A DNA stretch of 64,000 nt from Trichosphaerium sp. ATCC 40318. Taxonomy: Eukaryota > Protista > Tubulinea. Shown piece after piece: positions 13,554 through 64,000 of the stretch. The DNA is taken from the NCBI GenBank assembly GCA_038496445.1, contig JALMLS010000228.1, forward strand, positions 543,117 through 607,116, read 5' to 3'. The notes under the pieces are model-generated. The model was not told where the DNA came from and searched no databases. It worked only from the letters and a program-made list of their open reading frames with translations. Position 1 is the first letter of the stretch. The number at the start of each line of letters is the position of its first letter. The translations under genes were made by a program, and so were the position numbers.

Positions 13554-15383
13554 ATGTCCTCGTTTGTTGTTAGTACAATTGAGGCCATCAGAAAGATGGT
13601 AAGTGCCGCTAGAATATCAGGTTGTAACAAAATCTAGGTTTCAGAGGCTGAAAATAACATCGTAGAAGATTTAACCGCTACGGAGTACCATGTTGAGGAA
13701 AATGATACAGTTGATACAACAAAGTGCGATTATTAGTTTACATACTTGTGCTAAGCGATAATAGTAGCGGTAAGGTTGCATACAAGGACTATGCGCCTCA
13801 AGTATTTCGTCATCTACGAATGTTAAACGGTATTGACCATGAAAGCTTTCTCGTACGTCGTTTGGTAGCTTTCGTGACTTCGCTAACGCGTCCTCAACAG
13901 AAATCGTGGGAAGTTCCAAAAGAGGCCGCATTGGAAGGTGACAATGTCGCTAGTCGCTCTGGTTCACGCTTCTTCTTGACAACAGACACAAGGTTCTTTT
14001 TTAAAACTCTCATTCATGACGAAGTTGGTACTTTACTTCATATGCTACCTCAATATGTGCAAGTGCGTCAAGGAGCTCTTTTATAATGTTTTGTTCGCAA
14101 AAAAAATAACTTTTGTCAGCACCTCGAAAAGTACAAAAAATCGTTTATGATGCGCATATACGCATTAAACCGCATTGAGATTGAAGGAGAAAAGGTCTGG
14201 GTTATTGTGATGGGCAACTTACTTCCTAAAGTCAAGGTACTACATACATCTGCTACACGTAGCGCTGACACTATGCCAGACAAAAGAGAAATACGACTTA
14301 AAAGTAAGAGCTCCTTCTTTTCACTTTAATTTCAACAAGCTCCTAGGGTCGTAAGCCAAAGCCAGCCAAAGGTCCTTATGATCGCGCACCTGTTGCCGAC
14401 AATATTCGTAAAGACAACGAAATTACTCGTCAGTTTACTTTCAAACGCTGGCAGGATCACAAGCATTACCTGGCACAAATCTATGCAGATGTTCAGGCGA
14501 GTAACACTATCTTATTTTTGTAAACGAGGAAAACCGCGCTAACTCGATCACTATAGCTATTACAAGGTTGTAATGTGATGGATTATAGTTTACTCGCTGG
14601 CGTTTACACCGAGGAACAGTACAACAAGAATAAGAGAAAGTATGCTTGGAAAAATACTTATTTATTGTTTTAACATCACTGCAAGGTTCCGAGGCTTTAA
14701 GATTTACAGAGGGTTCAATTTGGAAGGCGAATACAACGAAGTCTACGTAATGGGTATTATTGATTGCCTCACAAATTTCTCCGCGAAAAAAAAACTGGCC
14801 AACATGTTCAAACGTACCTTGTGGAAAGAGAGTGCGCGAAATATACTTTATTTGCATGTTACACTAAAATACAATCCATAGATACTCTATCCACTGTACC
14901 TGCTTCCGATTACGCGAAACGCTACCTTGAATTCATGCTTAAAGATGGTACGTACAGTATTTTTCTGTTCAAAATTGGTTTGTTACTGATCTTTTATCTA
15001 GTCATCTCTGCACCATGCACCAAACCGCCACCAGATAAGCGTCTCATTATTCCAGACATTAAAGCTATTAAAAAGAAGCGACGGAATACAATGGCGACTG
15101 GTGCAAAGCAAGAGAGGTCTCATAGGCGTACTAAGAGGTGAGTGAATCTAAAATATACAATCTGTTGTTTACAGTTACATGTTGTAGCGCACGTGGTAAT
15201 AGCAAAGATGAGGTATCCTCTAATGGGAAACCTGTAACTGCTCGTGCATCAAGAAGCAGTCGTAAGAAGAGCTCTCGTAGAGCGAAATCAGAAGCTGGAG
15301 ACGATAAATCTTCCAAAAAGGAAGAGAAGTCTTCTAAATCTAACAAATCTATCAAGTCCTCTAAAGAGGAAAGTGAAGAGTAA
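13554..15383 (+). CDS. Phosphatidylinositol phosphate kinase (PIP5K/PIP4K family) with basic Ser/Lys tail
   Basis: KDYAPQVFRHLR, SRSGSRFFLTTDTRFFFKT, IVMGNL, YDLKG, VMDYSLLAG, VYVMGIIDCL, STVPASDYAKRYLEF. Confidence 0.92.
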
Positions 15384-18105: not shown

Positions 18106-18189
18106 CATTAACGTTCTCCATACGCAAAAAAAAACAAAAGTCGTATTTGTAGAACAACAAAGTATTCATTCGAATTAGTATTGAATAGC

Positions 18190-19462
18190 AAATACGTGCC
18201 AAAGTCTTCGTGAACTTGTTTCTTATTTGATTTGTTCTTCATGTAACGTACACCGACAGCACTTCTGATATCTTCGTTAGAGAAGTTAAGTAATCCTCCT
18301 GAGTTGAATAGCAAATCTTCAACTACAGAATAAAGCGAAGACCACTCAGATATATCAATGCCTGTCAAACATGTTAACATCTAGTAAACGTTTCCTTTGT
18401 TACCTTTAGCAGTTAAGAGTGGACCAAGTTCATTTTCCAAGTGCAGACCCCGTCTAGAACCCATATATATGACTGAAACAATGAGGATTAGATCTTTCGG
18501 AGGACTATTACTTACCATAAAGTATTGTACGATTCCCTTTCTCTTTGAGTCATAATCATGTTCTAAGCGCTAGAGTACAATCTCGTATAGCTCACTTGCA
18601 GATGCAGCAGGAAGATTTCGACTATAAACGATAAAAGGTGATAATTCAAAAATGAAAATCATACGTTCGTCTAGCTTTTCAAAGTGATCCCACACAGATA
18701 TATCTTCAAGTAGAGTCTAGCAAGTCATTAACCAAACTAAAGTATTAAAAGGTTGATTAACTTATGTGTAGATTACCTGTAGGTATCGGGGAATACCAGT
18801 CTGTTTGACTTTTGGAATTTTAAATTCTTGCTCTTCTGGCTTCTTGCTGTTCAAATCCAAACACTTTCTAATGTACTTCTAGCTGATATAATGTTCAAGT
18901 ACAATCTCTTCCTGTAGGTGGGCTACAAAGGGAATAACTGTTAGTATCGTTTTTTAACATGTGTATCACCTCAAGGATTAGAAGTATTACTTGATGTATA
19001 CTTATCTAATAATAAAAAGTATTTTTCTTGAGGTAAATAAACACGTGTCAAACGTCTGCTGTAAGAACGATGTGAGTTTTTCCTTCTTCAAATGATCTAT
19101 TTTCATACCTAAAAGGACCTAGGCGTGAACAGCTTAAAAGCTGTCAACGTACCCTCAGGGTAGTGACAGTTGACATAAGTTGTCAAACGGTCTTCAAGCA
19201 ACTCCGATAAATGGCTTGTTTACAGCAACGTTAGCAACTTTAGCAAATATAGATAGCCGAAAACGCACATGTGGTACTCGCAACACGCTGTAAGCCCATC
19301 TGATACATCTTTTTTGGGACTGTTGAAGCTGCTCTTCAGAAACGAACAAAGCTCCATCCTTCTCAGGTTACTAAAGAATACAGAGTTAAGTACTTTAAAA
19401 TACTTGCTTTGCTACGTACGCTTCAACATAATATTCATCTCGTAGATAGAACATACTAGATT
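18190..19462 (-). pseudogene. Intron-retaining, internally deleted copy of the NACHT region of the 1504-7505 gene (matches ~3830-5678)
   Basis: Near-identical peptide LTCLTGIDISEWSSLYSVVEDLLFNSGG. DNA is collinear, with jumps near 18875 (4508 to 4960) and 18975 (5050 to 5185). Confidence 0.92.
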
Positions 19463-28526: not shown

Positions 28527-29640
28527 TCGTAACAAAATCTGGGTTTCAAAAAAAGGCTGAAAATAACATTGTAGGAAGATTTAATCGCCACAGAAGAGTA
28601 CAACGCCGAGGAAAATGATACAAGGTTGACACAACAAAAAAGGTGCGATTATTTATTTACATAGGTACAACATACTATTTGGTACACACGTAACGCTAAC
28701 TCTCCTTCTTTTTTTACTTTAGTTTCAACAAACCCCTCCTAAACGCTGGCAGGATCACAAGCAACTACCTGGCACAAATATATGCAGATGTTCATTTATT
28801 TTTGTAAACGACAGCGCTAACTCGATCACTGCAGCTTTTACAAGGTTTTAATGTGCTGGATTATAATCCACTCGTTGGCGTACCACCGAGGAAACAGCAC
28901 AATAAGAATAAGAAGCGAGATGCTCGGATCAAAAAAATAGACTGTTTTTTTTTAAAACGTCACCTACAAGGTGCTTCTCAGAGGCTTTTAAGATTTACAA
29001 AGGGAGAGTTCAATTTTGGAAGGTGAATACAACAAAGTCTACGTGGTGGGTCGCCTCACAAATTTCTCCGCAAAAAAGAAGCTGGCCAACATGTTCAAGC
29101 GTACCTTGTGGAAAGAGTGTACGTTGAAATTATACATTTTCATTTGCATGTTATACGCTTAATGCAATCCATAGATACTCTGTCCACCGCACCTGCTTCC
29201 AATTGCGCCAAGCGCTACCTTGAGTTTATGTTTAAAGACGGTACGCGTGGTAGTATATATTTTTTTTTTTTTTTTTTGCTTTTGGTTCGTTAATAACGTT
29301 TTGTACAGTCATCTCTGCACCAAACCGCCCACAAATCTGTATGTTTACAGTCATGCGTTGTAGCGCACGTATTAATAGCAAGGATGAGGTATCCTCCCCA
29401 GCGGACAATCTGTAACTATTCGCGCATCAAGAAGCAGTCGTAAGAAGAGCTCTCGTAGAGCGAAATCAGAAGCTGGAGATGACAAGTCTTCCAAAAGGAA
29501 TAGAGAAGTCTTTTAAATCTAACAAGTCCTCGAAAGAGGAAAGCGAAGAAGGTAACGTGATGACAAAAACTGGAGTTTTGTAGGTTCAATAACCAATAAA
29601 TGACTTTCACGGAAGACTTTTTGTTGGGATTTTCGCTCGA
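28527..29640 (+). pseudogene. Intron-retaining, deleted and frameshifted copy of the PIP5K gene including its 3' UTR (matches ~13622-15470)
   Basis: aaacgctggcaggatcacaagca, DTLSTAPASNCAKRYLEFMFKDG and agaagagctctcgtagagcgaaatcagaagctggag all match the intact gene; about 500 bp of the kinase N-lobe is missing. Confidence 0.93.
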
Positions 29641-33363: not shown

Positions 33364-35056
33364 TTTTTGATTTTATTAGTCTATACATGAATGTCAATGA
33401 ACTCCAATTACCTCAAAAAGAGAACCCAACTAGTGCTGGGCGTCCAAACACAGGGATCGAACCTGCTTGACAGTATGAATCTTTGACAGGACGGCAGCGC
33501 TTATGCCAAAGGCATAACGTTCCTCTGCTACCAACAATATGAGGTACTAACCCTCACGCCCTTCACATAGGTTAAATTTACAATTGTACAAGTGTTAATA
33601 GTAAGGAAGGGCCGACCGCCTAACCTCACTTTGGTAAAAACCAATTTTGATGAAAGTCTCTTTGATATCTATCTTAACCAACAAAGCCATTTGAGAAAGA
33701 CTGTAAAATCCTTCACCATGACGAGCTCGGTTGTAGAGTTTCCAACACCATTTGATGAGAATGCCCAGAACCACAAGGTTCCTTTCAGTAAGCACAATGG
33801 CATTGTGTAGAGTGTGTGAGCTATAAGAAAAAGTATAGCCAAGGGAATGTTTAGTGATGCGTATAACATCAGCCGCAGGCGACTGAAACAAGATGTATGA
33901 GATTCGGTCTTGTGTCGCATCATAGGCACAAGGTAGAAATCTCAAAATGGATTTGAGTAGGTAGTCCCTAACTAGAGGAGCACATTTAAGTTTGGGATGC
34001 TTGAAAATGTGAGGGAAAGTTTTGTAAAGTTTTTTATGGGTAGAAAGCATTCGAGAAATTGTAGGAGTTGTGTCAACTTTACGGACAAAATTAAAGTGGT
34101 AGATGTCAGAGGAGGTGCGTGGTAACTTAATTTTGTGCTCGACAAAAAGGCGCTCCAACTCTGAGAGTGTTTTACCTCTGAAACGTTGGTTAATTTTAAT
34201 CCATGCTTTTTTGCATGTGGTGTAATGATAGGAGGCCGCCAGTCCCGACCAGAGGCCTCCACCTTCATCACCACCTGCATATTGATGCCAAAGGTTCCAT
34301 TGACATTGACTATGGTACACCTGAGAACCATAGTCAAAGAGGAACACCTCCCAAACACGTGCGAGTAGAGCTTGATTATACCTGGCAGGGTCAACCAAAC
34401 CTAAACCACAAGCTTTGAGAGGGTTAAAATAACGACTAGCTAGCTACACGCCGCATAGACAATTGATTATTGAAGAGTGTAGCAGCCGCATTCCGTATAG
34501 ATCTCACTTGCGTGGGATGAATACTAATAAAGCGAAAGTAATAAGTAAAAAGAGGCAGCGCATAGGCTGTATAAATTGTTTTCTTAGAAATTAGAGTACG
34601 TGCCAGGTAGCGCCAACGACAAACTTGCTTGGAGAGTTTGTCAATAACGTCAGAGGCATAGTTAGCCACTCCTTCATCAGCTCGGAAGTAAATACCTAGA
34701 TACTTTACCTCGTCCGTGTTTTGAAAGGCGGGCGTCTTGAGATTACTAATACTGAAGCACTTAGAGGGATTAGCTATAAGGCCTACGGTGTGTTCAGCAG
34801 CTCTAAGAACCGCTTTGAAGTTAATTGCGTCCTGTGGGCAAGAACACAATCCAGCAATATCATCCGCAAAAGCAAGGGAGGTGATACGTGTTTCACCAAG
34901 TGTTACACCTTGGTTTATTTCTTGCACACGGGCCAATATAGGCTCCATGCACAAGACAAAGAGAGTAGGAGAGAGAGGATCACCTTGTTTGACTCCTCTC
35001 TGCACCTCAAAGGGGTTACTTAGCTGGCGGTTAGCCAGCACTTGAAATGTAGAAGC
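33364..35056 (-). mobile_element. 5'-truncated non-LTR retrotransposon (L1/Tx1-like RT) with 13-bp TSD
   Basis: RT motifs RGVKQGDPLSPTLF, LAFADD, KYLGI, then GLGLVD. TSD GATACAAACTTGT at 33351-33363 and 35057-35069. A-rich 3' end AATAAAATCAAAAA. Confidence 0.93.
33595..35041 (-). pseudogene. Reverse transcriptase ORF2 C-terminal part, split by one frameshift near 34436
   Basis: Removing the duplicated GCTA in gtaGCTAGCTAgt joins the 201-aa and 267-aa ORFs as RRVASRYFNPLKACGLGLVDP. Confidence 0.88.
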
Positions 35057-35426
35057 GATACAAACTTGTGAATAATAAAGAAAAATAACTTATACTTCTT
35101 GTCTCAACGCAATTCTGACTTAACACGCACTATTATTGGATTGTTCTTTTAGTAGAGTATGGTAAAGCATGACTTTTTTGCATGTTTTCTTGATTGGTTC
35201 TACATTTTCTTCTTGTTTCTTTCTGATTGTAGAATTTGCGATAGTCATTAGTGCATTGCACGCTCAATTGGTTTTTTTTTTTTTTGCATTGCAAGTACGA
35301 GTCGAACCAAAGTGAAGTGGTAGTTTACACTTAACGGTTTTTGTTGAATTCAAGGTTTTTATTTCACACCAATTCAACCAATAGAAGAAAGTAAATATGT
35401 GATACACTCCATAACAAGGCTCGACA

Positions 35427-38400
35427 ATGGAAAAAGCTGTTTTGAACGGTTTCCGCTCGATTTAACTATTTTAGATAACCATACTGATGAAACACAGCCT
35501 ACGGGCAATAAAAAGAATAACGTACGCCATTCAAGCCTATAAGAGGCAAAAAACTGTAATTCTTTGTTGCTTACCCTCCAAAGCCTTCAAAATATTCCAA
35601 TGACTTCGATAGTACCAAGAAACTGATAATGAAGGTCCCAGATCACGAAATGTTGAAATCAACACGCCCAAAAAATTCAGGCGCCACATCCGACGCCACA
35701 AAACACAACACAACGATTGTAGGTACCTAAAACAAGTAAGTCACTGACATTTAAGCTGAGAATCGTTTACCGAGCATAGAAATTGCTCAAGAACTCGTTC
35801 AGAAGGTCCACCAGGCTGAAAAACAACACAACAGTGTCAAAAAATCAGTTAGAGAACTGTTAAAATCAAAAGAAGCCAGATTCAACAAGGTTGTGCCACA
35901 AAACCGTTCGCTCTCACTCTGTAAAGTCACTCAAACTATTTGTAGTTGTTTGAAGGTTATATTAGCGAGCTAAAGACACTTGTAGAAACAACAGAATTTG
36001 ATGCTAGTGTCCGACAGGAGGTACAATGGTTATTGTTTTTTTTGCCGGTTTTTTTTTCTTTTTTGCCTTTTTTTTTTTTCTTTTTTGACAGACTTAGATT
36101 ATTCGTCAAGAGACTGTACGGATAGAGAGGCATAAAAGACAAGTGCTGAGTGATATTGACGTCAGTTTTGCAACTGTAAAACGAAACATTGCTGCACAAA
36201 AACGCGATTACAAGGTTCTTTGATTCGACTTTGTTTCTCCTTTTCTGAAAACTTCTTGTAGCTCTCAGAGAATATTGCCAAACTTCAAGGTGTTGTTCGT
36301 GGATTCTCACAACGTAAGAGATATCGTCGCATGCTTGCACATGCCAAAAAACGAGAAAACATTGAGGCTGAGGTATCTTTACAACTTTATGAAGTATTAA
36401 CTTGTTACTAGGGATTTTATGAACCTTTGAAAGCTTCTGCAACATTTAATGGCGGACAAGAAGCCATTTTGGAGCTTCCTGTTATCAACAGCATCTTTGC
36501 TGATTTAATACCTATCTATAGTGTTAATAAAGAGTTTTTACAGCAATTAGAAGAGAGCAGAACAACCAAAAGTAAAGGAACAGGATACGGCAAAGTATTT
36601 GGCGACTTGGTAAATATGTTAACTATTTTGGGTTTTTCACATGTTGATCACGTGATTTTTTTTTTTGAAATGACAACATATTAGGCACCGTATTTGAAGT
36701 TGTATACGAATTATGTTAATAAGTTTAACACGATCCTTGATGCTACAGCAGCTGCCAAAGAACGAAATGCTGAATTTCAAAAATTTCTTAGAGTACGCTT
36801 TTGTACAACGCCTAACATGTGTCTCATCATTTTGTCTACTAGGGAGCATGTAAAAATCCAAATATAGGAACACAAACCCTAGAATCTTTTCAGATTATGC
36901 CAATACAAAGAGTTCCTGTACGTGAGACACCATCATATGTATGTGCTGACTTTTGTTGTTTTTTGCTTAGAGGTACAAGTTACTTCTAGAGGTAAGTACA
37001 GACTCTGATTTCCCTGCTCATGTTATAACATTCTCTTTAAGCAACTTATTAAATATACACCTGACGATCACGTGGACTTTGAAAACCTGACTAAAGCACT
37101 CGCGCTTATTGAAGGAGTGGCTAAAGAAATAGACGAGGTTTGTTGGATTTAAGAAATTTATGGGGGAACAAGTTTTGTTTCAAAAAACTAATTTTGGACA
37201 ACAGGGTAGAGCCATTGTAGAAAATACGAAAAAAATATTAGATATTCAAAAGAGGTTAGCACCTCAGTGTCCTGTAAGTCCTCTTTGTATGGCTTGAATT
37301 AACTTTTACACTTAATAGGGTCTGTTTGCACCGCATAGGAAGCTGCAACTGGAAGAATCTATTTTTTTGCTGGTACAAAACGAAGAAGTACTCGCGGCGT
37401 TATTTATTAATATATTTAGCGTGATACAGGGATATTAGATGACTTGTTCAATGATCTGCTACTCGTTACTCAAAAACTAAAAGGGCTTCTTTTGGACACT
37501 GAAAAACTCGTTGTAACTATAGAATACAAGCGAGCTAAGCTTGTTGAGCTAATAAGAAACTCTTTATTACAAAATGGAGGTACGCGTAGATATGTCAAAC
37601 GCTTTACGCGTTAGAAGAATCAAGTAGACATGACTCATCTGTAGTTTCCTACTTTGGCTTTCAAATTGTTTTGGCAAAGAAAGCGTATCAGTTCTATGCT
37701 TACACAGAAGATATATGCTCCAAGTGTTTTAATACAGTAAAGCAAGACGTAAGCGAACTCAAATCTATAGAAAAAACACGACATGCGTATCAGGGTGTAA
37801 TAACGTACTTAGTACTTACATTATGACGTGTTTTAGGACATGCAAGTACGCGCGTAAATCCCAGTATACTGAAGCTTGTTGATCAACTCAATGATCCATC
37901 GGGTTTCAAGCCTAACAATACACCAAGCAATTCTTCTGGACCATCTATGAAACAAAACTTGAAACCTAAACTAAGCACCATTGTAACGATATTTGAAGAA
38001 CTAGTAAAGCTTGAGACGGACATGTTTCGAGCGCCAATTGAGATACAGACATTGTTGCCCGGTTTTGAAAAACAGTTCAATCCCGTCACAACTACGCATG
38101 CTGCATAGTCGAATTGAGGTAAGAATCATCCACATTCGTACTGCATTTAACAATATTTAGGCGCTAAAGCAGAAACTAGAGCACCTCCACTTTTAAAAAT
38201 AAATTATTTGCGTTCCCACCTAAACAGAGCTTGTTATACGTTTGGAGAGACTGACGCATCACGAGCAAGTGCTCAAGGAGCATATGCTGATACTTTCCTT
38301 ATTAGGCAACAGTTCTTGTCAATACTGATAAGTTTGTTTCACTTGCAAGCTGTTAGAAAATACATACAAAAAAAGAATATACGCACGTGCACTTGCAAAG

Positions 38401-41066
38401 AGTTCTATGCCTATTGCAATAATAGCCAAAGATATTCCACAAGCTCTATTAACATAGTGCTGGTACAATCTATAATGTACGATAAGTTGTAAAGTGGTGG
38501 TATCAGGTTACACTGTGTTTTGAACTTTCGGTTGTTTTGAAAGCATCTGTGTTGAGTTTATTTGAGCTGTAGATGCTCTATTTCGCTTCTAATATCTAAC
38601 AAGACATACACAAGATGAAAGTTTATGCACACGTGCTTTCCAGATGTAGTAACTAGGCGAAAAAAGTTGACAAATTTTCTGAATTTGTTTTAACGCCATC
38701 ATCGCCACAAGTCGTATAAGAAGGCCTTTGATATTACCATGTATCGTTGTAGAAAGCAATACAGGGCAAAAACCGCACTGACATGTGAAGTCGGGTTTGA
38801 AGCGTCTTGTAAGAGTACATTCGCACAAAGTACGTCTATACGAACCACAACGTACTCAGTTTGTATTAATTTTTTGTTCTAAGCTGAGCCTCATTATTAT
38901 TGTGTCAATGAAGATATAGTCGTACGCATGAGGATACTCTCAACCTTTCTACAACGGTTTTTCCTCTTTTCCAGAGAATTTTACCACCGCTTAACGATTT
39001 GAAGGCTTGTACTGTTTGTGGTAAGGCACTAAGACCATATATGCCTTGGGATAGGCCTTTTGATGTGTCATTGAAAACATTGATCTTCACAGGTAAGTAA
39101 TGATTACAAATTTATCACGTGTATACTAAAATAAACAAGACCAGCACATTGCGCGTTAGCTTTACAGTACGCTGTGTACAAAGCTGCTTATATCACATGT
39201 CATTAACTAAGTCTTAGTGTTGCAAGAATATTATGGCTTGACAATAAAAGACCACAAACAATCGTGTTACATAACTAAGGTAATCCAAAAGAATATAAAG
39301 TTCATGAACTAACACGTGGGTACTTTTTAGCAAAGGATTCGTGGTACTCGATATAAAGGTAACGCCGTCTTGTTTACGAAAGTATCAAAAGTTGTAAACT
39401 CTGTTTGTTTTTTTAAGCGTTTACCATCCCTACACCGCCAAAGCATGAGAGAGGAGATTACTTTCCTCATCTTAAAGATCTACCAGTTAATTTATGTGAA
39501 GCTTCCTGGATCTTGAGGTTTAAAACAGACAGAATTGACTTGAAAGAAAACGTGATTTGGTTCATTGTATGAACTGCCTTTTTTGTCAACGAAACTAATT
39601 TTGTGCACCAGATCCCGTCACTGTTCGCTTTAGATAGACCACTAATCTCAATAAACATGCTACAGGTAATTGAAATAATGTTGACCTTGACTAGAGGTGA
39701 AAACCATTAATGATTGTCATTGTGGAAGCACGATTTACCTTTTTTTGTTATGCTTAAAAACCTAGGCTGTTGAACTTTGATACATCAAAATCAAGTGCGT
39801 CTTCTCCGTCTCCAACTGGTAGTGATCCTCCGAGCCTCCTTGGTTCCAAATGTACTACAGCAATGTCTTAAATATCTTTTTATTTCTCGTTATAAAAACG
39901 CAGCTTTCAGAACAAGACAAGGATTCCTCAGACCCAGACTCAGACTCAGACTCTGAACTACCTAATGATTACACCAAACTATACGGTGGTATTGATAATA
40001 TCACATACTTGAACTACAATGAAAGTAATAATGAATCCTCCGATGATGAAGGATCAGAAAGGTTACCAACAACAGCGTACTCATCACTTGCATTACCTGG
40101 AAACAAAGAACAAGAACAGGATTCAGAAGACATACCGCTTCACACTGAAGCGTATGGTCAGTCTCAGAACCTCAACACCTCTTCCGATGATCTAACGGCT
40201 GGAATGCACGCTGGAGCGTATGCTGCGGCCGATGTAGGTACGAGATATCATCGTTCAAGCTTGAATTTTACATCATGTCGTAGAACAATACGTTGAAGAG
40301 AAGGACGCAGAAGTACCACAGGAGGTGCAGAATTCTGATCTTCAACAGAATTACACCCTAGATACCGATGCTTGTGGTGATTACAGTGCTTATACAAATC
40401 CAAGTATAACCCCATACACAGAAGCAGCCATAACCGATGTAACGCCTTATGAAGAACCAAACACTTCAGTGAGATACTTGAGCGAAGATGATAAAAAAGG
40501 CGAAGTGACATATCTTAGTCCAGAGAACATTTTTTTTTTAATGTTTGGAAATTTATTAATAAAACCACACGATAGTTACAATTTACAAGCCATAATCAGT
40601 GGCAGGCCTTCCGTGTAAGGCGTATACGCCTAGCACGTGCTTTTTTCCACTTCTTTAATGCAGCTGGATCAAACGCTTTCACAAGTGAAAGTGTATCTCT
40701 AGCATGCTTGGCATCATTACTACTGCGAAACACTTTGTAGACCAATAAACCACGGCCTTTTTCCCGTTGTACCACAGCTAGCTTGTCCTTGAGTAAAAAC
40801 GAAGGCAGCTCATCAAAAGACATGAGACAAGCATTTGTTTTTAGTCCCGATCTGGAATCCTTCCATCGAAGAAGAAGACAATAAGAGTTCAACAAGTGAA
40901 AAAGGACAAACTTACTCGTCAAGTACTGTTGATACCGACGATATAAGTCAAGGTACCTCTTATATCTACTTAATTTATGATAAACGCAAGCTTTTAGGTT
41001 CTGGTCAGGGTTACACATACGCAAAATGTAGAATTGCAAGATGTGGACAAGACAGAATTGACATCC
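35427..41066 (+). pseudogene. 3'-truncated copy of the IQ-RhoGEF(DH-PH)-CLU gene
   Basis: IQ IAKLQGVVRGFSQRKRY; DH APYLKLYTNYVN, IMPIQRVPRYKLLLEQLIKYTPDDHVD; PH LFNDLLLVT. Cut mid-exon at 41066. Confidence 0.85.
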
Positions 41067-42592
41067 GACTCACCACAGTGAAACCCAACGCTGTATGAGT
41101 ACAACCGGTGCACTGAATCGCACTGGACACATGCTTTAACCCTGTAATTTGAAAGTGTGAAAACAAACTAAAACATGTGTTGACTCACGACTCACACAGT
41201 TGAGTCATCAAAAAAAAAAAAAAAAAAAAAGAACAAAATGGAGAGACGCACTTGAGCAACCCTTTTCCGTTGCCATAGTAGTTTATTTTCAAGTCCTTTT
41301 CCCCATTTACACCGCCTCCTACGTTATAAGGAGTGACTAAGCGAAAAAATGTGAGCTGTCAGGGGAAAAAGCAAGCACGAGTCACCGAGTCATTTTTTGG
41401 TTTTTTTTTTGTTCGAGAAAATGAACAAAGTTGAGTGAACGCTGTTAGTACAAAAAAAATCCCCAAGTACCTATTCCATCAACAGAGCCTTCACCATCAT
41501 CCGTGTCACACTCCTATCGGTTTTGTTCCCGCTTGTACGAAGCTACAAATATTTGAGTCAGTGGGTGGTGACTCGGTTGAGAGCTAAAAGTACATGTTCG
41601 AAAAGGGTCGAGTCAACTTTAGCATTAAAAATGAACTCACCTTCGCTGTGAACGGGTTCGTCTCTGTTGAAATCCTCACTTAACTGCGCCTTGGATCCAC
41701 GTTTGGGCAGCTCTAAATGCATATGAGTCAGTGGGAGTTGGTGACTCGGTTGGGAGTGAACAAAATAAAAATATCGAAATGGGTTGAGTCAACTTTTAGA
41801 TAGCAGCGCTGAACTTACCTTCAAGTTTGACAAGACCATCACTACAATCGCCCTTGTCCTCTTCTTCCTATGATTCGCCCTTAGACAAATCTATTTAAAA
41901 AAAAAAATGAGTAAAGTACTAGAGATGGTATGGAAAACTGAAATTGTTTACACTTTTTGAAAAAAGAGCTAAAAGTGAAATATTTCAGTATTTTCATTTC
42001 CAATTTGCAACAGTTTTTAGCAAGATTCTGGGTCCATTTTCGTACTCTACGCTCCTTGTAGCGCAACATAGAAAGTCGAATACCTTTTTTTATGTAAGTT
42101 TTGTTTGAAACAGTGAAGTTATAAAATTTCGTAATTTTCACTATTTCAGTTTCCCATACCATCTCTATAGCTCTACAAAGGCGAGTTAGCTCAGTGTCAG
42201 GGTGAAAATTAGGGTCCAGTCACGACTCAGTCACACATCCTCACCTGAAGATGCCAGTGTTTGTTTCTTTAACTCCACTACAACTGTTGAGCGCTCCTTG
42301 CGAGTTACTGGGTAGGTTGAAGTTGAGTGCACGGCTCGAAATGGAGAGGCGAGATTGCTGAACCTGATCCTTGGTTTGGAGGGTCCTGTTATCTTCCACT
42401 GAACGAACGTATGAGTTGGTGTCAAAGGAAGAAAAAAAGAACTGAGTAAAAGTGCCTTGACCTTCCAATTTCTGGGCGTCTCGGTTCAGCGCTTCCCTCC
42501 TGCTGCGAATGTGGCTTCTACTGGAGGTGTTGTAGGCGTTTTTCATCACCAAGGCGTACTTTAGGAAGACTTGGTTGCCATCATAGTTTCTA
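41067..42592 (-). pseudogene. Unknown multi-exon gene remnant with GAGTC-rich introns, truncated at the duplication breakpoint
   Basis: Phase-compatible exons: ..EEEDKGDCSDGLVKLE / ELPKRGSKAQLSEDFNRDEPVHSE / ASYKREQNR*ECDTDDGEGSVDGI / VTPYNVGGGVNGEKDLKINYYGNGKGLLK / VKACVQCDSVHRLYSYSVGFHCGGV. Two in-frame TAGs. Confidence 0.55.
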
Positions 42593-42659
42593 AAAAGTTG
42601 AAAGGATCAGTTATTGGAAATGGAGAAAGATAAGAAAAAAAAAAAAAAGAGTCCGACTA

Positions 42660-43397
42660 AACACGCTGTCGGGGGTGACCTCCTGTCGGGGTTAAAATTG
42701 CTCCTGAGTCCTACTCACACGCTCAATAGTGACTTGACGCTCAGATCACGCTGTTGGCTCGACACAATCAAAAAAACAAAATTTGATATTCATCACAAAA
42801 CACGTGATTTACAATTCTTTGTTCTGTTTACTTACTATGTGTTTTTAGCGCGGTTGTTGTATTAAATGCTTTTATTAATGACAACTCGGGCATGTGACTC
42901 AAGTTATGTCATATAGGGATGGTGATAATATGACTTGGGGTTCTGTCGGGGGTAAAAAGGTGCTCGAGTCGTGAGTGGTTTTTTTTGTTCATTTAACATT
43001 ATGACTCCATGTCTGTTGGGGGTAAAAGTGGTGCCGAGTCGGACTCAACCATTCGAGTTGTAACTGACTGAGGTTAAAGAGCGGGATCAAGTCACAAAGG
43101 AGGTGTTTTTATTAACACGTGACTAGTGTACATTTTACACTTGTGTCACGACTCAGTATTCACTATGACTAGGGGTTGTGCCAGGGGTAAAAACGGTGTC
43201 GAGTCATGAGTCAGTACACGTTATTACTCCATGTATGTCAGGGGTAAAAACATGCTCAAGTCACGAGTCATAATTTTAGGTTTTCACATGGTGACTAATG
43301 TCTGTCGGGGGTAAAAATGGGTGTTAGTCGGTACTTAACAATATTTATAATGGTACTATGCATTGGCGACTGAGTCGAGTCAGTCAAAAGTCGACTC
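42660..43397 (+). repeat. Array of ~50-bp units ATGACT-N7-9-TGTCRGGGGTAAAAA-N6-9-AGTC with variable linkers
   Basis: Cores at 42667, 42684, 42944, 43014, 43179, 43236 and 43303; outliers at 41357 and 42195. Confidence 0.85.
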
Positions 43398-43699
43398 TTT
43401 AACACCACTAGTGGTAAGTGTGAGTTCAAGTGTGGCAGCATCATGCACAGAAGAACTATTCGAACAGAATTGGATCAAGATTCTAGTACTAGTGTACACC
43501 GGATTAGCTCCTTTGGCGATAAAACCTAAGTTGCTTTGCACCTCAACACTTCTTTATGACTTATTTCTACTTTTCTTGTACACCTCAGCAAATAACTCAA
43601 AAAAATTTGACAAGTCCACATTAACTTCTGACAGTTTTCCAAGCAATCCAGGGGATCTAAGTATGAGTATCTCCACAGTGGGTTAGTGGATTACTGCTT

Positions 43700-54194: not shown

Positions 54195-55225
54195 TAGATG
54201 TTGGAATGTTCCTGGATCATTGTCGAATCTGGGGTACCTATCACTTGAATACAATCATCACCAGCACCACCTATTATATTAGATACTTCTACATTACTGA
54301 GGACAGCCTTATCATTTCCTGAACCAAGATTGATGGTGTTTTGGAACACAACATTTGTTGCTCGAATGCAGTCATTTCCAGTACCTTGTTTTGAAACAAT
54401 TACTAAAAGTAAACTTCACATACGATACCTGTGAGCACATTGCCTGCGATTGAAGCACCCTCCATCACAACTAAGCAATCAAAGCCTTCCAATAGTGATA
54501 TACCACTCCTTACAATAGCACCTGCTCCAACAAGAACACAATCATCTCCGCTTGATCCAATAATTGAGTCTACAGACTCTCCAGGTAGTATCTTGATACA
54601 GTTTGTACCTAGCAATACGTTACTATAATAATTACAAGAACCTTTGTATTGCGTACATTCATCAAAGTTACAGCGATCACAAGCACAACCTCGAGAACAA
54701 GGACCCAAGAAAATAGTCGAACAAATACTGTTATCAAAATTTGTTGGGTTTGATGTTGGTGCGATAGTTGCTGGCTGCATTGTTGGCTGTATTGTAGGTG
54801 CATCTGTAGCATCCATCGAAACATTAAAAGTTGTAGGTTCAGCAATACCACAAAGGCTTATTGTATTAAGACTTTTACTAGTTAGTTACAAAATCTTCGA
54901 AATGAAACTTACATTGCGGTACTACTTTCAGTAGAAAAATATGTTCTATCTCCTACCGTTATAGATGCTTGTAATTCCGATGTACCAGTTCCTTCACAGT
55001 ATAAGAGATAATCACGTGAACTATTTCACTAACCTGTTACTTCCATAGAGAACGAACATGTAACAGTACCACCCACAGCTATCATTCCACTAGCAGAGAA
55101 TCCTGTCCCATCAACAGACTCTCCAAAAGCCTTATTGCAGATTACTTTAATTGAATACTACTTCTATAACTACGTACAATGTCACAGGATTTCTTGGTGT
55201 AACAAAAGAAGGTGTTCGGAATTTT
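54195..55225 (-). pseudogene. Inserted fragment of a Cys-rich surface protein gene with RTX-like (GxGND/GDD) Ca-binding repeats
   Basis: PT-rich linker, Cys cluster, IIGSSGDDCV, TGTGNDCI, LGSGNDKA and IIGGAGDDCI, lying between CLU motifs ARIYPP and PLSSD. Confidence 0.7.
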
Positions 55226-55850: not shown

Positions 55851-56021
55851 TATCTTTTTCAAGTTTGCAATCGATCCTTATGGTATCTATGGTGGTGATA
55901 AATTTACATCAAAGGCCGTAGGTAAGAAACCCAATGATTTAAATCAAAGGTTACCCTACTTTTTTTTTTTCCCTGATCTTTTCGATTAAGGACATGAATT
56001 GAATGGTCTTAAAGCGTACTA
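55851..56021 (+). other. 171-bp inverted exon-intron-exon segment of the CLU domain
   Basis: The plus strand reads IFFKFAIDPYGIYGGDKFTSKAV|gtaag..aag|GHELNGLKAYY while the flanking exons are on the minus strand. Confidence 0.88.
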
Positions 56022-56446
56022 CCACTACGAATGTACTAGTACGCAAATCAAATCAGTTACAACTTAATCAACACTTGAAGCATGTCATACCTTCTCGCCT
56101 CCAGCAATACCACCTACATTAACAGGTTTAATTGTCTTCTGGTGATTAGGAATACTTCTCTCATTGATGATTACCCTTAATACCAGCATAAGAGAAAGAA
56201 ATACAAAGGACAAACAAAGTAATTGCTGATGACAACATAGAGAAAAAACTAGGAAAAAAAAAACGTGCCCTCCTGATTTACTCGCAATATCAATAAATTG
56301 TTTGGAGAGCGTACTGAGTTTATACAAGTACTCTAATTTATCGTCTAATCCTTTAGGTCTATACGCAAACAACACTTGAAACTCAGAATTCCAATCTATG
56401 CAAGCACACAGACAAGTTGAAGCAATACTCTTGAAGAAGACTTTGT

Positions 56447-59400
56447 GGATGTCAATTCTGTCTTGTCCACATCTTGCAATTCTACATTTTGCGTATGTGT
56501 AACCCTGACCAGAACCTAAAAGCTTGCGTTTATCATAAATTAAGTAGATATAAGAGGTACCTTGACTTATATCGTCGGTATCAACAGTACTTGACGAGTA
56601 AGTTTGTCCTTTTTCACTTGTTGAACTCTTATTGTCTTCTTCTTCGATGGAAGGATTCCAGATCGGGACTAAAAACAAATGCTTGTCTCATGTCTTTTGA
56701 TGAGCTGCCTTCGTTTTTACTCAAGGACAAGCTAGCTGTGGTACAACGGGAAAAAGGCCGTGGTTTATTGGTCTACAAAGTGTTTCGCAGTAGTAATGAT
56801 GCCAAGCATGCTAGAGATACACTTTCACTTGTGAAAGCGTTTGATCCAGCTGCATTAAAGAAGTGGAAAAAAGCACGTGCTAGGCGTATACGCCTTACAC
56901 GGAAGGCCTGCCACTGATTATGGCTTGTAAATTGTAACTATCGTGTGGTTTTATTAATAAATTTCCAAACATTAAAAAAAAAATGTTCTCTGGACTAAGA
57001 TATGTCACTTCGCCTTTTTTATCATCTTCGCTCAAGTATCTCACTGAAGTGTTTGGTTCTTCATAAGGCGTTACATCGGTTATGGCTGCTTCTGTGTATG
57101 GGGTTATACTTGGATTTGTATAAGCACTGTAATCACCACAAGCATCGGTATCTAGGGTGTAATTCTGTTGAAGATCAGAATTCTGCACCTCCTGTGGTAC
57201 TTCTGCGTCCTTCTCTTCAACGTATTGTTCTACGACATGATGTAAAATTCAAGCTTGAACGATGATATCTCGTACCTACATCGGCCGCAGCATACGCTCC
57301 AGCGTGCATTCCAGCCGTTAGATCATCGGAAGAGGTGTTGAGGTTCTGAGACTGACCATACGCTTCAGTGTGAAGCGGTATGTCTTCTGAATCCTGTTCT
57401 TGTTCTTTGTTTCCAGGTAATGCAAGTGATGAGTACGCTGTTGTTGGTAACCTTTCTGATCCTTCATCATCGGAGGATTCATTATTACTTTCATTGTAGT
57501 TCAAGTATGTGATATTATCAATACCACCGTATAGTTTGGTGTAATCATTAGGTAGTTCAGAGTCTGAGTCTGAGTCTGGGTCTGAGGAATCCTTGTCTTG
57601 TTCTGAAAGCTGCGTTTTTATAACGAGAAATAAAAAGATATTTAAGACATTGCTGTAGTACATTTGGAACCAAGGAGGCTCGGAGGATCACTACCAGTTG
57701 GAGACGGAGAAGACGCACTTGATTTTGATGTATCAAAGTTCAACAGCCTAGGTTTTTAAGCATAACAAAAAAAGGTAAATCGTGCTTCCACAATGACAAT
57801 CATTAATGGTTTTCACCTCTAGTCAAGGTCAACATTATTTCAATTACCTGTAGCATGTTTATTGAGATTAGTGGTCTATCTAAAGCGAACAGTGACGGGA
57901 TCTGGTGCACAAAATTAGTTTCGTTGACAAAAAAGGCAGTTCATACAATGAACCAAATCACGTTTTCTTTCAAGTCAATTCTGTCTGTTTTAAACCTCAA
58001 GATCCAGGAAGCTTCACATAAATTAACTGGTAGATCTTTAAGATGAGGAAAGTAATCTCCTCTCTCATGCTTTGGCGGTGTAGGGATGGTAAACGCTTAA
58101 AAAAACAAACAGAGTTTACAACTTTTGATACTTTCGTAAACAAGACGGCGTTACCTTTATATCGAGTACCACGAATCCTTTGCTAAAAAGTACCCACGTG
58201 TTAGTTCATGAACTTTATATTCTTTTGGATTACCTTAGTTATGTAACACGATTGTTTGTGGTCTTTTATTGTCAAGCCATAATATTCTTGCAACACTAAG
58301 ACTTAGTTAATGACATGTGATATAAGCAGCTTTGTACACAGCGTACTGTAAAGCTAACGCGCAATGTGCTGGTCTTGTTTATTTTAGTATACACGTGATA
58401 AATTTGTAATCATTACTTACCTGTGAAGATCAATGTTTTCAATGACACATCAAAAGGCCTATCCCAAGGCATATATGGTCTTAGTGCCTTACCACAAACA
58501 GTACAAGCCTTCAAATCGTTAAGCGGTGGTAAAATTCTCTGGAAAAGAGGAAAAACCGTTGTAGAAAGGTTGAGAGTATCCTCATGCGTACGACTATATC
58601 TTCATTGACACAATAATAATGAGGCTCAGCTTAGAACAAAAAATTAATACAAACTGAGTACGTTGTGGTTCGTATAGACGTACTTTGTGCGAATGTACTC
58701 TTACAAGACGCTTCAAACCCGACTTCACATGTCAGTGCGGTTTTTGCCCTGTATTGCTTTCTACAACGATACATGGTAATATCAAAGGCCTTCTTATACG
58801 ACTTGTGGCGATGATGGCGTTAAAACAAATTCAGAAAATTTGTCAACTTTTTTCGCCTAGTTACTACATCTGGAAAGCACGTGTGCATAAACTTTCATCT
58901 TGTGTATGTCTTGTTAGATATTAGAAGCGAAATAGAGCATCTACAGCTCAAATAAACTCAACACAGATGCTTTCAAAACAACCGAAAGTTCAAAACACAG
59001 TGTAACCTGATACCACCACTTTACAACTTATCGTACATTATAGATTGTACCAGCACTATGTTAATAGAGCTTGTGGAATATCTTTGGCTATTATTGCAAT
59101 AGGCATAGAACTCTTTGCAAGTGCACGTGCGTATATTCTTTTTTTGTATGTATTTTCTAACAGCTTGCAAGTGAAACAAACTTATCAGTATTGACAAGAA
59201 CTGTTGCCTAATAAGGAAAGTATCAGCATATGCTCCTTGAGCACTTGCTCGTGATGCGTCAGTCTCTCCAAACGTATAACAAGCTCTGTTTAGGTGGGAA
59301 CGCAAATAATTTATTTTTAAAAGTGGAGGTGCTCTAGTTTCTGCTTTAGCGCCTAAATATTGTTAAATGCAGTACGAATGTGGATGATTCTTACCTCAAT

Positions 59401-62400
59401 TCGACTATGCAGCATGCGTAGTTGTGACGGGATTGAACTGTTTTTCAAAACCGGGCAACAATGTCTGTATCTCAATTGGCGCTCGAAACATGTCCGTCTC
59501 AAGCTTTACTAGTTCTTCAAATATCGTTACAATGGTGCTTAGTTTAGGTTTCAAGTTTTGTTTCATAGATGGTCCAGAAGAATTGCTTGGTGTATTGTTA
59601 GGCTTGAAACCCGATGGATCATTGAGTTGATCAACAAGCTTCAGTATACTGGGATTTACGCGCGTACTTGCATGTCCTAAAACACGTCATAATGTAAGTA
59701 CTAAGTACGTTATTACACCCTGATACGCATGTCGTGTTTTTTCTATAGATTTGAGTTCGCTTACGTCTTGCTTTACTGTATTAAAACACTTGGAGCATAT
59801 ATCTTCTGTGTAAGCATAGAACTGATACGCTTTCTTTGCCAAAACAATTTGAAAGCCAAAGTAGGAAACTACAGATGAGTCATGTCTACTTGATTCTTCT
59901 AACGCGTAAAGCGTTTGACATATCTACGCGTACCTCCATTTTGTAATAAAGAGTTTCTTATTAGCTCAACAAGCTTAGCTCGCTTGTATTCTATAGTTAC
60001 AACGAGTTTTTCAGTGTCCAAAAGAAGCCCTTTTAGTTTTTGAGTAACGAGTAGCAGATCATTGAACAAGTCATCTAATATCCCTGTATCACGCTAAATA
60101 TATTAATAAATAACGCCGCGAGTACTTCTTCGTTTTGTACCAGCAAAAAAATAGATTCTTCCAGTTGCAGCTTCCTATGCGGTGCAAACAGACCCTATTA
60201 AGTGTAAAAGTTAATTCAAGCCATACAAAGAGGACTTACAGGACACTGAGGTGCTAACCTCTTTTGAATATCTAATATTTTTTTCGTATTTTCTACAATG
60301 GCTCTACCCTGTTGTCCAAAATTAGTTTTTTGAAACAAAACTTGTTCCCCCATAAATTTCTTAAATCCAACAAACCTCGTCTATTTCTTTAGCCACTCCT
60401 TCAATAAGCGCGAGTGCTTTAGTCAGGTTTTCAAAGTCCACGTGATCGTCAGGTGTATATTTAATAAGTTGCTTAAAGAGAATGTTATAACATGAGCAGG
60501 GAAATCAGAGTCTGTACTTACCTCTAGAAGTAACTTGTACCTCTAAGCAAAAAACAACAAAAGTCAGCACATACATATGATGGTGTCTCACGTACAGGAA
60601 CTCTTTGTATTGGCATAATCTGAAAAGATTCTAGGGTTTGTGTTCCTATATTTGGATTTTTACATGCTCCCTAGTAGACAAAATGATGAGACACATGTTA
60701 GGCGTTGTACAAAAGCGTACTCTAAGAAATTTTTGAAATTCAGCATTTCGTTCTTTGGCAGCTGCTGTAGCATCAAGGATCGTGTTAAACTTATTAACAT
60801 AATTCGTATACAACTTCAAATACGGTGCCTAATATGTTGTCATTTCAAAAAAAAAAATCACGTGATCAACATGTGAAAAACCCAAAATAGTTAACATATT
60901 TACCAAGTCGCCAAATACTTTGCCGTATCCTGTTCCTTTACTTTTGGTTGTTCTGCTCTCTTCTAATTGCTGTAAAAACTCTTTATTAACACTATAGATA
61001 GGTATTAAATCAGCAAAGATGCTGTTGATAACAGGAAGCTCCAAAATGGCTTCTTGTCCGCCATTAAATGTTGCAGAAGCTTTCAAAGGTTCATAAAATC
61101 CCTAGTAACAAGTTAATACTTCATAAAGTTGTAAAGATACCTCAGCCTCAATGTTTTCTCGTTTTTTGGCATGTGCAAGCATGCGACGATATCTCTTACG
61201 TTGTGAGAATCCACGAACAACACCTTGAAGTTTGGCAATATTCTCTGAGAGCTACAAGAAGTTTTCAGAAAAGGAGAAACAAAGTCGAATCAAAGAACCT
61301 TGTAATCGCGTTTTTGTGCAGCAATGTTTCGTTTTACAGTTGCAAAACTGACGTCAATATCACTCAGCACTTGTCTTTTATGCCTCTCTATCCGTACAGT
61401 CTCTTGACGAATAATCTAAGTCTGTCAAAAAAGAAAAAAAAAAAAGGCAAAAAAGAAAAAAAAACCGGCAAAAAAAACAATAACCATTGTACCTCCTGTC
61501 GGACACTAGCATCAAATTCTGTTGTTTCTACAAGTGTCTTTAGCTCGCTAATATAACCTTCAAACAACTACAAATAGTTTGAGTGACTTTACAGAGTGAG
61601 AGCGAACGGTTTTGTGGCACAACCTTGTTGAATCTGGCTTCTTTTGATTTTAACAGTTCTCTAACTGATTTTTTGACACTGTTGTGTTGTTTTTCAGCCT
61701 GGTGGACCTTCTGAACGAGTTCTTGAGCAATTTCTATGCTCGGTAAACGATTCTCAGCTTAAATGTCAGTGACTTACTTGTTTTAGGTACCTACAATCGT
61801 TGTGTTGTGTTTTGTGGCGTCGGATGTGGCGCCTGAATTTTTTGGGCGTGTTGATTTCAACATTTCGTGATCTGGGACCTTCATTATCAGTTTCTTGGTA
61901 CTATCGAAGTCATTGGAATATTTTGAAGGCTTTGGAGGGTAAGCAACAAAGAATTACAGTTTTTTGCCTCTTATAGGCTTGAATGGCGTACGTTATTCTT
62001 TTTATTGCCCGTAGGCTGTGTTTCATCAGTATGGTTATCTAAAATAGTTAAATCGAGCGGAAACCGTTCAAAACAGCTTTTTCCATTGTCGAGCCTTGTT
62101 ATGGAGTGTATCACATATTTACTTTCTTCTATTGGTTGAATTGGTGTGAAATAAAAACCTTGAATTCAACAAAAACCGTTAAGTGTAAACTACCACTTCA
62201 CTTTGGTTCGACTCGTACTTGCAATGCAAAAAAAAAAAAAACCAATTGAGCGTGCAATGCACTAATGACTATCGCAAATTCTACAATCAGAAAGAAACAA
62301 GAAGAAAATGTAGAACCAATCAAGAAAACATGCAAAAAAGTCATGCTTTACCATACTCTACTAAAAGAACAATCCAATAATAGTGCGTGTTAAGTCAGAA

Positions 62401-64000
62401 TTGCGTTGAGACAAGAAGTATAAGTTATTTTTCTTTATTATTCACAAGTTTGTATCGCTTCTACATTTCAAGTGCTGGCTAACCGCCAGCTAAGTAACCC
62501 CTTTGAGGTGCAGAGAGGAGTCAAACAAGGTGATCCTCTCTCTCCTACTCTCTTTGTCTTGTGCATGGAGCCTATATTGGCCCGTGTGCAAGAAATAAAC
62601 CAAGGTGTAACACTTGGTGAAACACGTATCACCTCCCTTGCTTTTGCGGATGATATTGCTGGATTGTGTTCTTGCCCACAGGACGCAATTAACTTCAAAG
62701 CGGTTCTTAGAGCTGCTGAACACACCGTAGGCCTTATAGCTAATCCCTCTAAGTGCTTCAGTATTAGTAATCTCAAGACGCCCGCCTTTCAAAACACGGA
62801 CGAGGTAAAGTATCTAGGTATTTACTTCCGAGCTGATGAAGGAGTGGCTAACTATGCCTCTGACGTTATTGACAAACTCTCCAAGCAAGTTTGTCGTTGG
62901 CGCTACCTGGCACGTACTCTAATTTCTAAGAAAACAATTTATACAGCCTATGCGCTGCCTCTTTTTACTTATTACTTTCGCTTTATTAGTATTCATCCCA
63001 CGCAAGTGAGATCTATACGGAATGCGGCTGCTACACTCTTCAATAATCAATTGTCTATGCGGCGTGTAGCTAGCTAGTCGTTATTTTAACCCTCTCAAAG
63101 CTTGTGGTTTAGGTTTGGTTGACCCTGCCAGGTATAATCAAGCTCTACTCGCACGTGTTTGGGAGGTGTTCCTCTTTGACTATGGTTCTCAGGTGTACCA
63201 TAGTCAATGTCAATGGAACCTTTGGCATCAATATGCAGGTGGTGATGAAGGTGGAGGCCTCTGGTCGGGACTGGCGGCCTCCTATCATTACACCACATGC
63301 AAAAAAGCATGGATTAAAATTAACCAACGTTTCAGAGGTAAAACACTCTCAGAGTTGGAGCGCCTTTTTGTCGAGCACAAAATTAAGTTACCACGCACCT
63401 CCTCTGACATCTACCACTTTAATTTTGTCCGTAAAGTTGACACAACTCCTACAATTTCTCGAATGCTTTCTACCCATAAAAAACTTTACAAAACTTTCCC
63501 TCACATTTTCAAGCATCCCAAACTTAAATGTGCTCCTCTAGTTAGGGACTACCTACTCAAATCCATTTTGAGATTTCTACCTTGTGCCTATGATGCGACA
63601 CAAGACCGAATCTCATACATCTTGTTTCAGTCGCCTGCGGCTGATGTTATACGCATCACTAAACATTCCCTTGGCTATACTTTTTCTTATAGCTCACACA
63701 CTCTACACAATGCCATTGTGCTTACTGAAAGGAACCTTGTGGTTCTGGGCATTCTCATCAAATGGTGTTGGAAACTCTACAACCGAGCTCGTCATGGTGA
63801 AGGATTTTACAGTCTTTCTCAAATGGCTTTGTTGGTTAAGATAGATATCAAAGAGACTTTCATCAAAATTGGTTTTTACCAAAGTGAGGTTAGGCGGTCG
63901 GCCCTTCCTTACTATTAACACTTGTACAATTGTAAATTTAACCTATGTGAAGGGCGTGAGGGTTAGTACCTCATATTGTTGGTAGCAGAGGAACGTTATG
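56447..64000 (-). repeat. Right arm of the inverted duplication (continues past the window end)
   Basis: Reverse complement of 33513-41066. Confidence 0.97.
62457..64000 (+). mobile_element. Duplicated copy of the truncated non-LTR retrotransposon
   Basis: Same RT ORFs (62472-63077, 63115-63918), same frameshift and same 5' junction as 33364-35056. Confidence 0.93.

Follow-up and report, generated by a model that had tools for sequence, protein, structure and literature searches.

A GAGTC-rich island in Trichosphaerium reads as a truncated copy of a non-autonomous hAT transposon family

An island saturated with the motif GAGTC, and with GACTC on the opposite strand, lies at 41067-43397 of the window (the whole 64-kb stretch of Trichosphaerium DNA analysed here). 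From its sequence, the feature is real and well defined but ordinary in kind: it reads as one truncated member of a new hAT family that is non-autonomous and has GAGTC as its subterminal repeat motif. We consider it very probable that the island is the right-hand part of such a copy, truncated on the left and interrupted by nested DNA, with GAGTC forming putative transposase-binding subterminal repeats. The island belongs to a repeat family, family A, which has defined ends, target-site duplications (TSDs) and a characteristic architecture of repeated units, and the same assembly holds a coding relative, family B.

GAGTC sites are concentrated in one part of the window

Over its full 64 kb, the window has no surplus of GAGTC/GACTC sites: it carries 80, as many as expected. 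Their distribution is far from even, with 27 of them in the 2331 bp of the island, where 2.0 would be expected, and 53 in the remaining 61.7 kb (0.86 per kb). This amounts to a 13.5-fold excess (Poisson P ~2e-21). First-order Markov simulations matched to the dinucleotide composition of the island averaged 4.3 sites and peaked at 13, and the densest other 2331-bp span in the window has at most 7. The saturation reported in a first-pass annotation of this DNA is therefore borne out, as is the pairing of sites that it described. The sites conform to a wider consensus, YGAGTCR: a pyrimidine precedes the motif in 24 of 27 cases and a purine follows it in 24 of 27, with T in the 3' position in none (0 of 27). 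The same annotation had GACTC at both limits of the island. GACTC does make up the first five bases past the inverted-repeat junction at 41066/41067, and the last site does occupy 43393-43397, yet the element itself ends 13 nt further on, at 43410.

The copy in the window consists of the following parts:

41067-41198, plus strand: an internal 'core' of family A and, after it, a single minus-oriented unit; present about 12 times in the genome (85-91% identity); the left edge is the duplication junction
41199-42667, plus strand: copy-specific interior, with plus-oriented units at 41356-41390 and 42195-42231
41551-41640 and 41721-41818 (also given as 41551-41620 and 41721-41796): local duplication of about 170 bp in the interior, with three GAGTC sites in each stretch
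41917-42187, no strand assigned: nested, unrelated miniature element (MITE) with 37-nt inverted arms at 41911-41947 and 42140-42176
42668-43410, plus strand: right arm of the family-A element, with six plus-oriented units of ~35 nt starting at 42683, 42943, 43013, 43179, 43236 and 43302
43398-43410, minus strand: right terminal inverted repeat (TIR), reading inward TAGTGGTGTTAAA; the element ends at 43410

GAGTC sites are spread unevenly over these parts, with 3 in the core piece, 11 in the copy-specific middle, 0 in the nested MITE and 13 in the right arm. The right arm is 94% identical to its counterpart on contig C228, 93% to that on C186, 90% to that on C267 and 88% to that on C173. The core piece has a counterpart on C267 that is present in tandem, three to four times.

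The 1.47-kb interior is different in character, as a genome search returned no match to it other than the nested MITE and the two units. Its two paralogous stretches, 41551-41640 and 41721-41818, are about 95-105 nt long and have splice-like GT and AG bounds on the minus strand, and the short segments between them are unrelated. We considered whether this middle region might be a decayed transposase or another gene. A tblastn comparison with the hAT loci was negative, and the open frames of the island had no Pfam match above threshold, no paralogue and no Atlas support; the putative small exons of the region were searched one by one. The first-pass annotation had placed the GAGTC sites almost entirely in introns and upstream DNA, but these searches gave no supported gene to which such introns would belong. 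The nested MITE occurs at 84-91% identity on at least ten contigs (C150, C36, C124, C286, C154, C325 and others). Rfam and tRNA searches of the island found no tRNA and a single sub-threshold match, to mir-290, which falls on the hairpin of the nested MITE and is probably due to chance.

Copies elsewhere in the assembly define the family and its ends

Genome-wide pattern and BLAST searches of the 70.3-Mb assembly (642 contigs) recovered other GAGTC islands at about 10 loci. The first-pass annotation had held that its reading of the island as an element would fail if no other islands existed and the enrichment came down to tandem duplication of one unit; the existence of these loci removes that objection. 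At least four of the copies are complete. They range from 0.36 to 2.2 kb, are bounded by 13-bp TIRs (TAGTGRTGTTAAA) and encode no protein:

C267:14453-16617, 2165 bp: perfect 8-bp TSD TATGGGAT
C228:53542-54812, 1271 bp: perfect 8-bp TSD CTAATTAT
C16:438036-438650, 615 bp: TSD matching at 7 of 8 positions
C185:63617-63973, 357 bp: perfect 8-bp TSD GCAAGATG

The 615-bp and 357-bp copies are internal-deletion derivatives that retain both ends. The four complete copies have 14-18 GAGTC sites per kb, and a 2.2-kb element can contain as many as 39. Two incomplete copies, on C173 and C186, reach 17-24 per kb.

Both ends of the family could be placed. On the right, six copies are alike up to the equivalent of 43410 and diverge from the next base on. 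The left end, found by following conservation leftward, begins TAGTGATGTTAAAC in the copies on C267, C185, C228 and C173 and in the C16 copy at 438036. The left tip, TAGTGATGTTAAA, and the right end read inward, TAGTGGTGTTAAA (in fuller form TAGTGGTGTTAAAG), are the same 13-mer in inverted orientation at opposite ends of complete copies. The left end is missing from the window copy, so the evidence for an 8-bp TSD comes from other family-A copies. Across all of the elements described here, perfect 8-bp TSDs flank the family-A copies on C267, C228 and C185, the family-B copies on C22 and C106 and a sister MITE on C278, and three more copies match at 7 of 8 positions.

These termini also classify the family. 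The TIRs of family A are short and carry the tip TAGTG, an instance of YARNG, which we take to be the consensus of hAT tips, and the duplicated target measures 8 bp. Together, the tip and the 8-bp TSDs place family A in the hAT superfamily, and the term 'unclassified element' used in the first-pass annotation can be dropped. Target duplications of 8 bp are typical of hAT elements (PMC10368747).

Family A is a mirror-image array of a composite unit

The GAGTC sites are not randomly placed but are parts of a degenerate unit of ~35 nt, of which the window has eight plus-oriented occurrences between 41356 and 43340. Each unit consists of a TGTCRGGGKTAAAA block followed about 10 nt downstream by RAGTC and usually then by a second GAGTC or GACTC. 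In the complete family-A copies, the unit, with one or two YGAGTCR sites behind the block, accounts for nearly the entire length. Similarity between individual units is no more than 60-80%, and what has been retained is the motif blocks. When 34 instances of the unit, drawn from seven copies, are compared, conservation is confined to the columns of the GGGG-TAAAA block (TGTCRGGGKTAAAA) and of RAGTC. The enrichment in GAGTC is thus owed in part to repetition of the unit.

In the full-length copy on C267, the left half is built of minus-oriented units and the right half of plus-oriented ones, indicating that family A is a mirror-image array set between short TIRs. The GGGG-TAAAA block is conserved across units as well as GAGTC is. 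It follows that the element recognised by a transposase may be larger than GAGTC, or may be different from it.

The breakpoint of an inverted duplication truncates the window copy

The left edge of the island coincides with the inner edge of one arm of a perfect inverted repeat:

33513-41066, plus strand: proximal arm, 7554 nt, 100% complementary to the distal arm; contains the 5' part of a CLU gene and a reverse transcriptase (RT) fragment (RVT_1, 34436-35041)
56447-64000, minus strand: distal arm, running to the end of contig C16 (base 607116), which alone sets its outer limit; at its inner junction the CLU gene is continuous

The first-pass annotation had the island starting exactly at this breakpoint, and many BLAST matches do begin at query position 1, as they would if 41067 were a terminus of the element. 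We rejected 41067 as a terminus, as the other copies continue leftward with family sequence. In all 11 of them, the stretch of 70 nt that precedes the equivalent of 41067 is conserved element sequence (a minus-oriented unit); at this place the window has part of the inverted-repeat arm instead, namely a CLU exon. The window copy has therefore been cut internally, and the junction is not a terminus. Judging by the complete copies that contain the 41067-41198 piece, the cut would lie roughly 550-900 nt from the left terminus. The coincidence of the island with the breakpoint thus reflects truncation and not an element boundary.

The two junctions of the inverted repeat differ in age. An open frame at 56085-56678 spans the distal junction at 56446/56447 and has a weak CLU match that lies below the Pfam cut-off (E 0.0057). 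A diverged homologue at C49:106489-107930 (alignment coordinates) aligns without a break over 56446/56447, indicating that the distal junction is ancestral and the proximal one derived. The proximal junction is blunt, without microhomology, and joins the middle of an exon to the middle of the element.

It is quite possible, if short of probable, that the inverted duplication is an assembly chimera. The real element would then be complete and lie away from the CLU fragment, and its coincidence with the breakpoint would have no biological meaning. Perfect identity of the arms over 7554 nt fits an artefact of this kind, as do a distal arm that stops exactly at the contig end, an ancestral distal junction and a blunt proximal junction from mid-exon to mid-element that lacks microhomology. 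The junction has, however, no shared repeat that could mislead an assembler, and a loop of 15.4 kb would be unusual if a simple fold-back read were the cause. A chimera would in any case be compatible with the hAT explanation of the island.

We consider it unlikely that the element itself caused the rearrangement, a possibility raised in the first-pass annotation. The routes considered here are aberrant hAT transposition and breakage at hairpin-prone palindromic GAGTC/GACTC arrays that seeded an inverted duplication. Alternative transposition of Ac/Ds can produce inverted duplications; in the window, the junction falls inside the element, where it abuts a GACTC site, and the arrays are rich in short palindromes and inverted units. 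However, rearrangements mediated by hAT elements, alternative transposition included, join DNA at element termini, whereas the junction here is internal, at neither terminus, and shows no microhomology. The four complete copies are simple insertions with TSDs. At 12-18 sites per kb, moreover, some 3-4% of random breaks would fall against the edge of a site, and what we have is a single case, noticed after the fact. It is more doubtful still that the mirror-image arrays of composite units (GGGG-TAAAA plus GAGTC) act as hairpin-prone fragile sites that seed blunt inverted duplications, including the one at 41066/41067.

The surroundings of the inverted repeat hold several other rearranged or repeated sequences. 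Within the CLU gene, about 174 bp (55852-56025) are inverted in place relative to C49:107137-107311, with 94% identity on the opposite strand and flanks on the same strand. About 1 kb of the CLU region (54221-55221) is missing from the C49 homologue but recurs at C7:229830-230836 with 97% identity, and probably represents a repeat that inserted recently. Immediately beyond the proximal arm, 148 nt (33365-33512) have 96-99% identical copies on C41, C70, C228 and C135 and form the edge of another repeat family. Elsewhere in the window, 3819-5678 is paired with 18184-19462 and 14533-15318 with 28811-29496 in a direct segmental duplication (period about 14.3 kb, 86-100% identity).

A coding relative carries BED and hAT dimerisation domains

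No family-A copy encodes a transposase. The genome contains 22 matches to the hAT dimerisation domain, and one of them, on C22, is bracketed by clusters of GACTC/GAGTC. This match lies in an element that defines family B:

C22:286737-289135 (locus L016, 4738-7136), 2.4 kb, coding on the minus strand: TIR TAGTACTGTTAAC, perfect TSD AGTGCAAC, GACTC/GAGTC clusters at both ends

Its minus strand encodes an N-terminal zf-BED domain (1e-7) and a C-terminal Dimer_Tnp_hAT domain (6e-19), and the C-terminal piece matches residues 541-596 of the Hermes transposase (2e-10). Domain and homology searches, in which the transposase pieces were searched singly and not as a joined or spliced model, returned no match to the RNase-H-like catalytic core expected of a hAT transposase. 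Two in-frame stop codons, both TAG, interrupt otherwise continuous frames, and the frame changes three times, perhaps because of short introns or of damage, so that this coding copy may be dead. It is the sole coding copy of a GAGTC-type hAT element that we found in the assembly. Short derivatives of family B with TSDs are present on C119, C106, C70 and C32.

The left end of family A and the right end of family B have in common TAGTnnTGTTAA and the 11-mer AAGTCGAGTCG at an equal offset from the tip, which indicates that the two ends are homologous. The TIRs themselves differ at 3-4 of 13 positions, and the exact family-A TIR was not found near any of the 22 hAT-dimerisation matches in the assembly. 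With its homologous ends, its motif clusters and its BED and dimerisation domains, family B is the best candidate in the assembly for a relative that might have mobilised family A.

Other candidates were examined as sources of a transposase. A hAT-coding locus on C243 (L015, position 4725) has an end that begins with a similar tip, TAGTGACGTTAAAC, and was set aside as an autonomous partner because it has no GAGTC clusters. Six further loci with TAGTGATGTTAAA-type tips also lack the GAGTC density and belong to other families. A 4.5-kb repeat common to C560, C398 and C9 proved to lack a transposase; all that it has of family A is a nested fragment.

Tips of the TAGTGATGTTAAA type without GAGTC clusters were seen at L029-L031, L033 and L034, and in a 362-bp MITE on C278 (L032, 762-1123) flanked by the TSD CTAAGCAT. 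Together with the C243 locus, these elements suggest a group of hAT families that have similar tips and different subterminal motifs.

GAGTC as a candidate transposase-binding repeat

The first-pass annotation had offered three explanations for the dense sites, namely subterminal sites of a transposase, replication iterons and bZIP sites. The first of these fits the copies with TIRs and TSDs and the coding relative, and the other two are not favoured. An element on C22 that has homologous ends, clusters of the same motif, and both BED and hAT dimerisation domains leads us to read GAGTC as subterminal transposase-binding repeats. By analogy with Hermes, a BED-type hAT transposase most likely docks at the YGAGTCR/RAGTC sites of both families, A and B. 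We infer that family B or a lost relative mobilised family A. In such a scheme, the transposase would be supplied in trans, with family A as its passenger; its BED zinc-finger domains would bind the GAGTC subterminal repeats, and this binding would bring both ends together for cut-and-paste excision, a role demonstrated for Hermes.

Subterminal repeats are also found in the hAT transposons Ac/Ds and Tol2. The Hermes transposase acts through several protomers, whose BED domains contact short subterminal repeats scattered over ~450 bp of each end (PMC10368747). An AAGT-based motif is present 17 times in one end and 14 times in the other, forming quasi-palindromic pairs close to the tip, and excision in vitro is reported to require the BED domain (PMC10368747). 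Family A resembles Hermes-type elements in its short TIRs with a YARNG-type tip (TAGTG), in its 8-bp TSDs and in the numerous short motif copies that occupy either end region, facing both ways and often forming quasi-palindromic pairs. Its internal-deletion copies are like the MITE-type derivatives of hAT elements, and its coding relative, family B, has an N-terminal BED finger and a C-terminal hAT dimerisation domain that resembles the one in Hermes.

There are also differences. The motif is YGAGTCR in family A and AAGT in Hermes, although the related form RAGTC overlaps AAGT. Unlike in Hermes, the motif of family A sits in a composite unit of ~35 nt with a second conserved block, and the units fill almost the whole element, whereas in known hAT elements such repeats occupy only the outer 150-450 bp. 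No autonomous partner with TIRs identical to those of family A was found in the assembly.

A regulatory function in the host is very unlikely. Under this explanation, the island would be a cis-regulatory field of bZIP sites (AP-1/GCN4-type, TGASTCA) serving neighbouring genes, and 7 of the 27 sites are indeed full TGAGTCA/TGACTCA heptamers. The other 20 are not, the consensus is YGAGTCR, and the sites travel in mobile copies with TIRs and TSDs at unrelated loci, whereas a bZIP cluster would have palindromic heptamers conserved in place at a host locus. Between four orthologous copies, in a comparison of low power, variation at the site columns is close to that at the other columns (22% against 28%, P 0.35). 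Site columns that vary like the rest are expected of dead transposon copies and give no sign of host constraint.

Helitrons begin with 5' TC, end with 3' CTRR behind a 3' hairpin, insert between A and T, and have neither TIRs nor TSDs. It is scarcely credible that the island belongs to the Helitrons or other rolling-circle elements, and equally so that it consists of replication-origin iterons or of small-RNA genes in an array. The right end of the element in the window does show CTAG before a T, downstream of a 7-bp stem, and the spacing of the units is iteron-like. The CTAG+T and the hairpin are, however, specific to the window: elsewhere the copies finish with CACTA, not with CTRR, and the bases beyond it are unrelated. 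The copies also have inverted terminal repeats and 8-bp TSDs, and the Rfam and tRNA searches gave only the one sub-threshold match in the nested MITE.

Implications

Reading the island as part of a truncated, non-autonomous hAT copy turns what had appeared to be an undescribed system into a repeat family that can be annotated, with ends, a TSD, a unit structure and a candidate transposase relative. Two hAT families are thereby described in the genome of a poorly studied protist. Their GAGTC repeats provide candidate BED-domain binding sites for the study of how hAT ends are recognised outside insects and plants.
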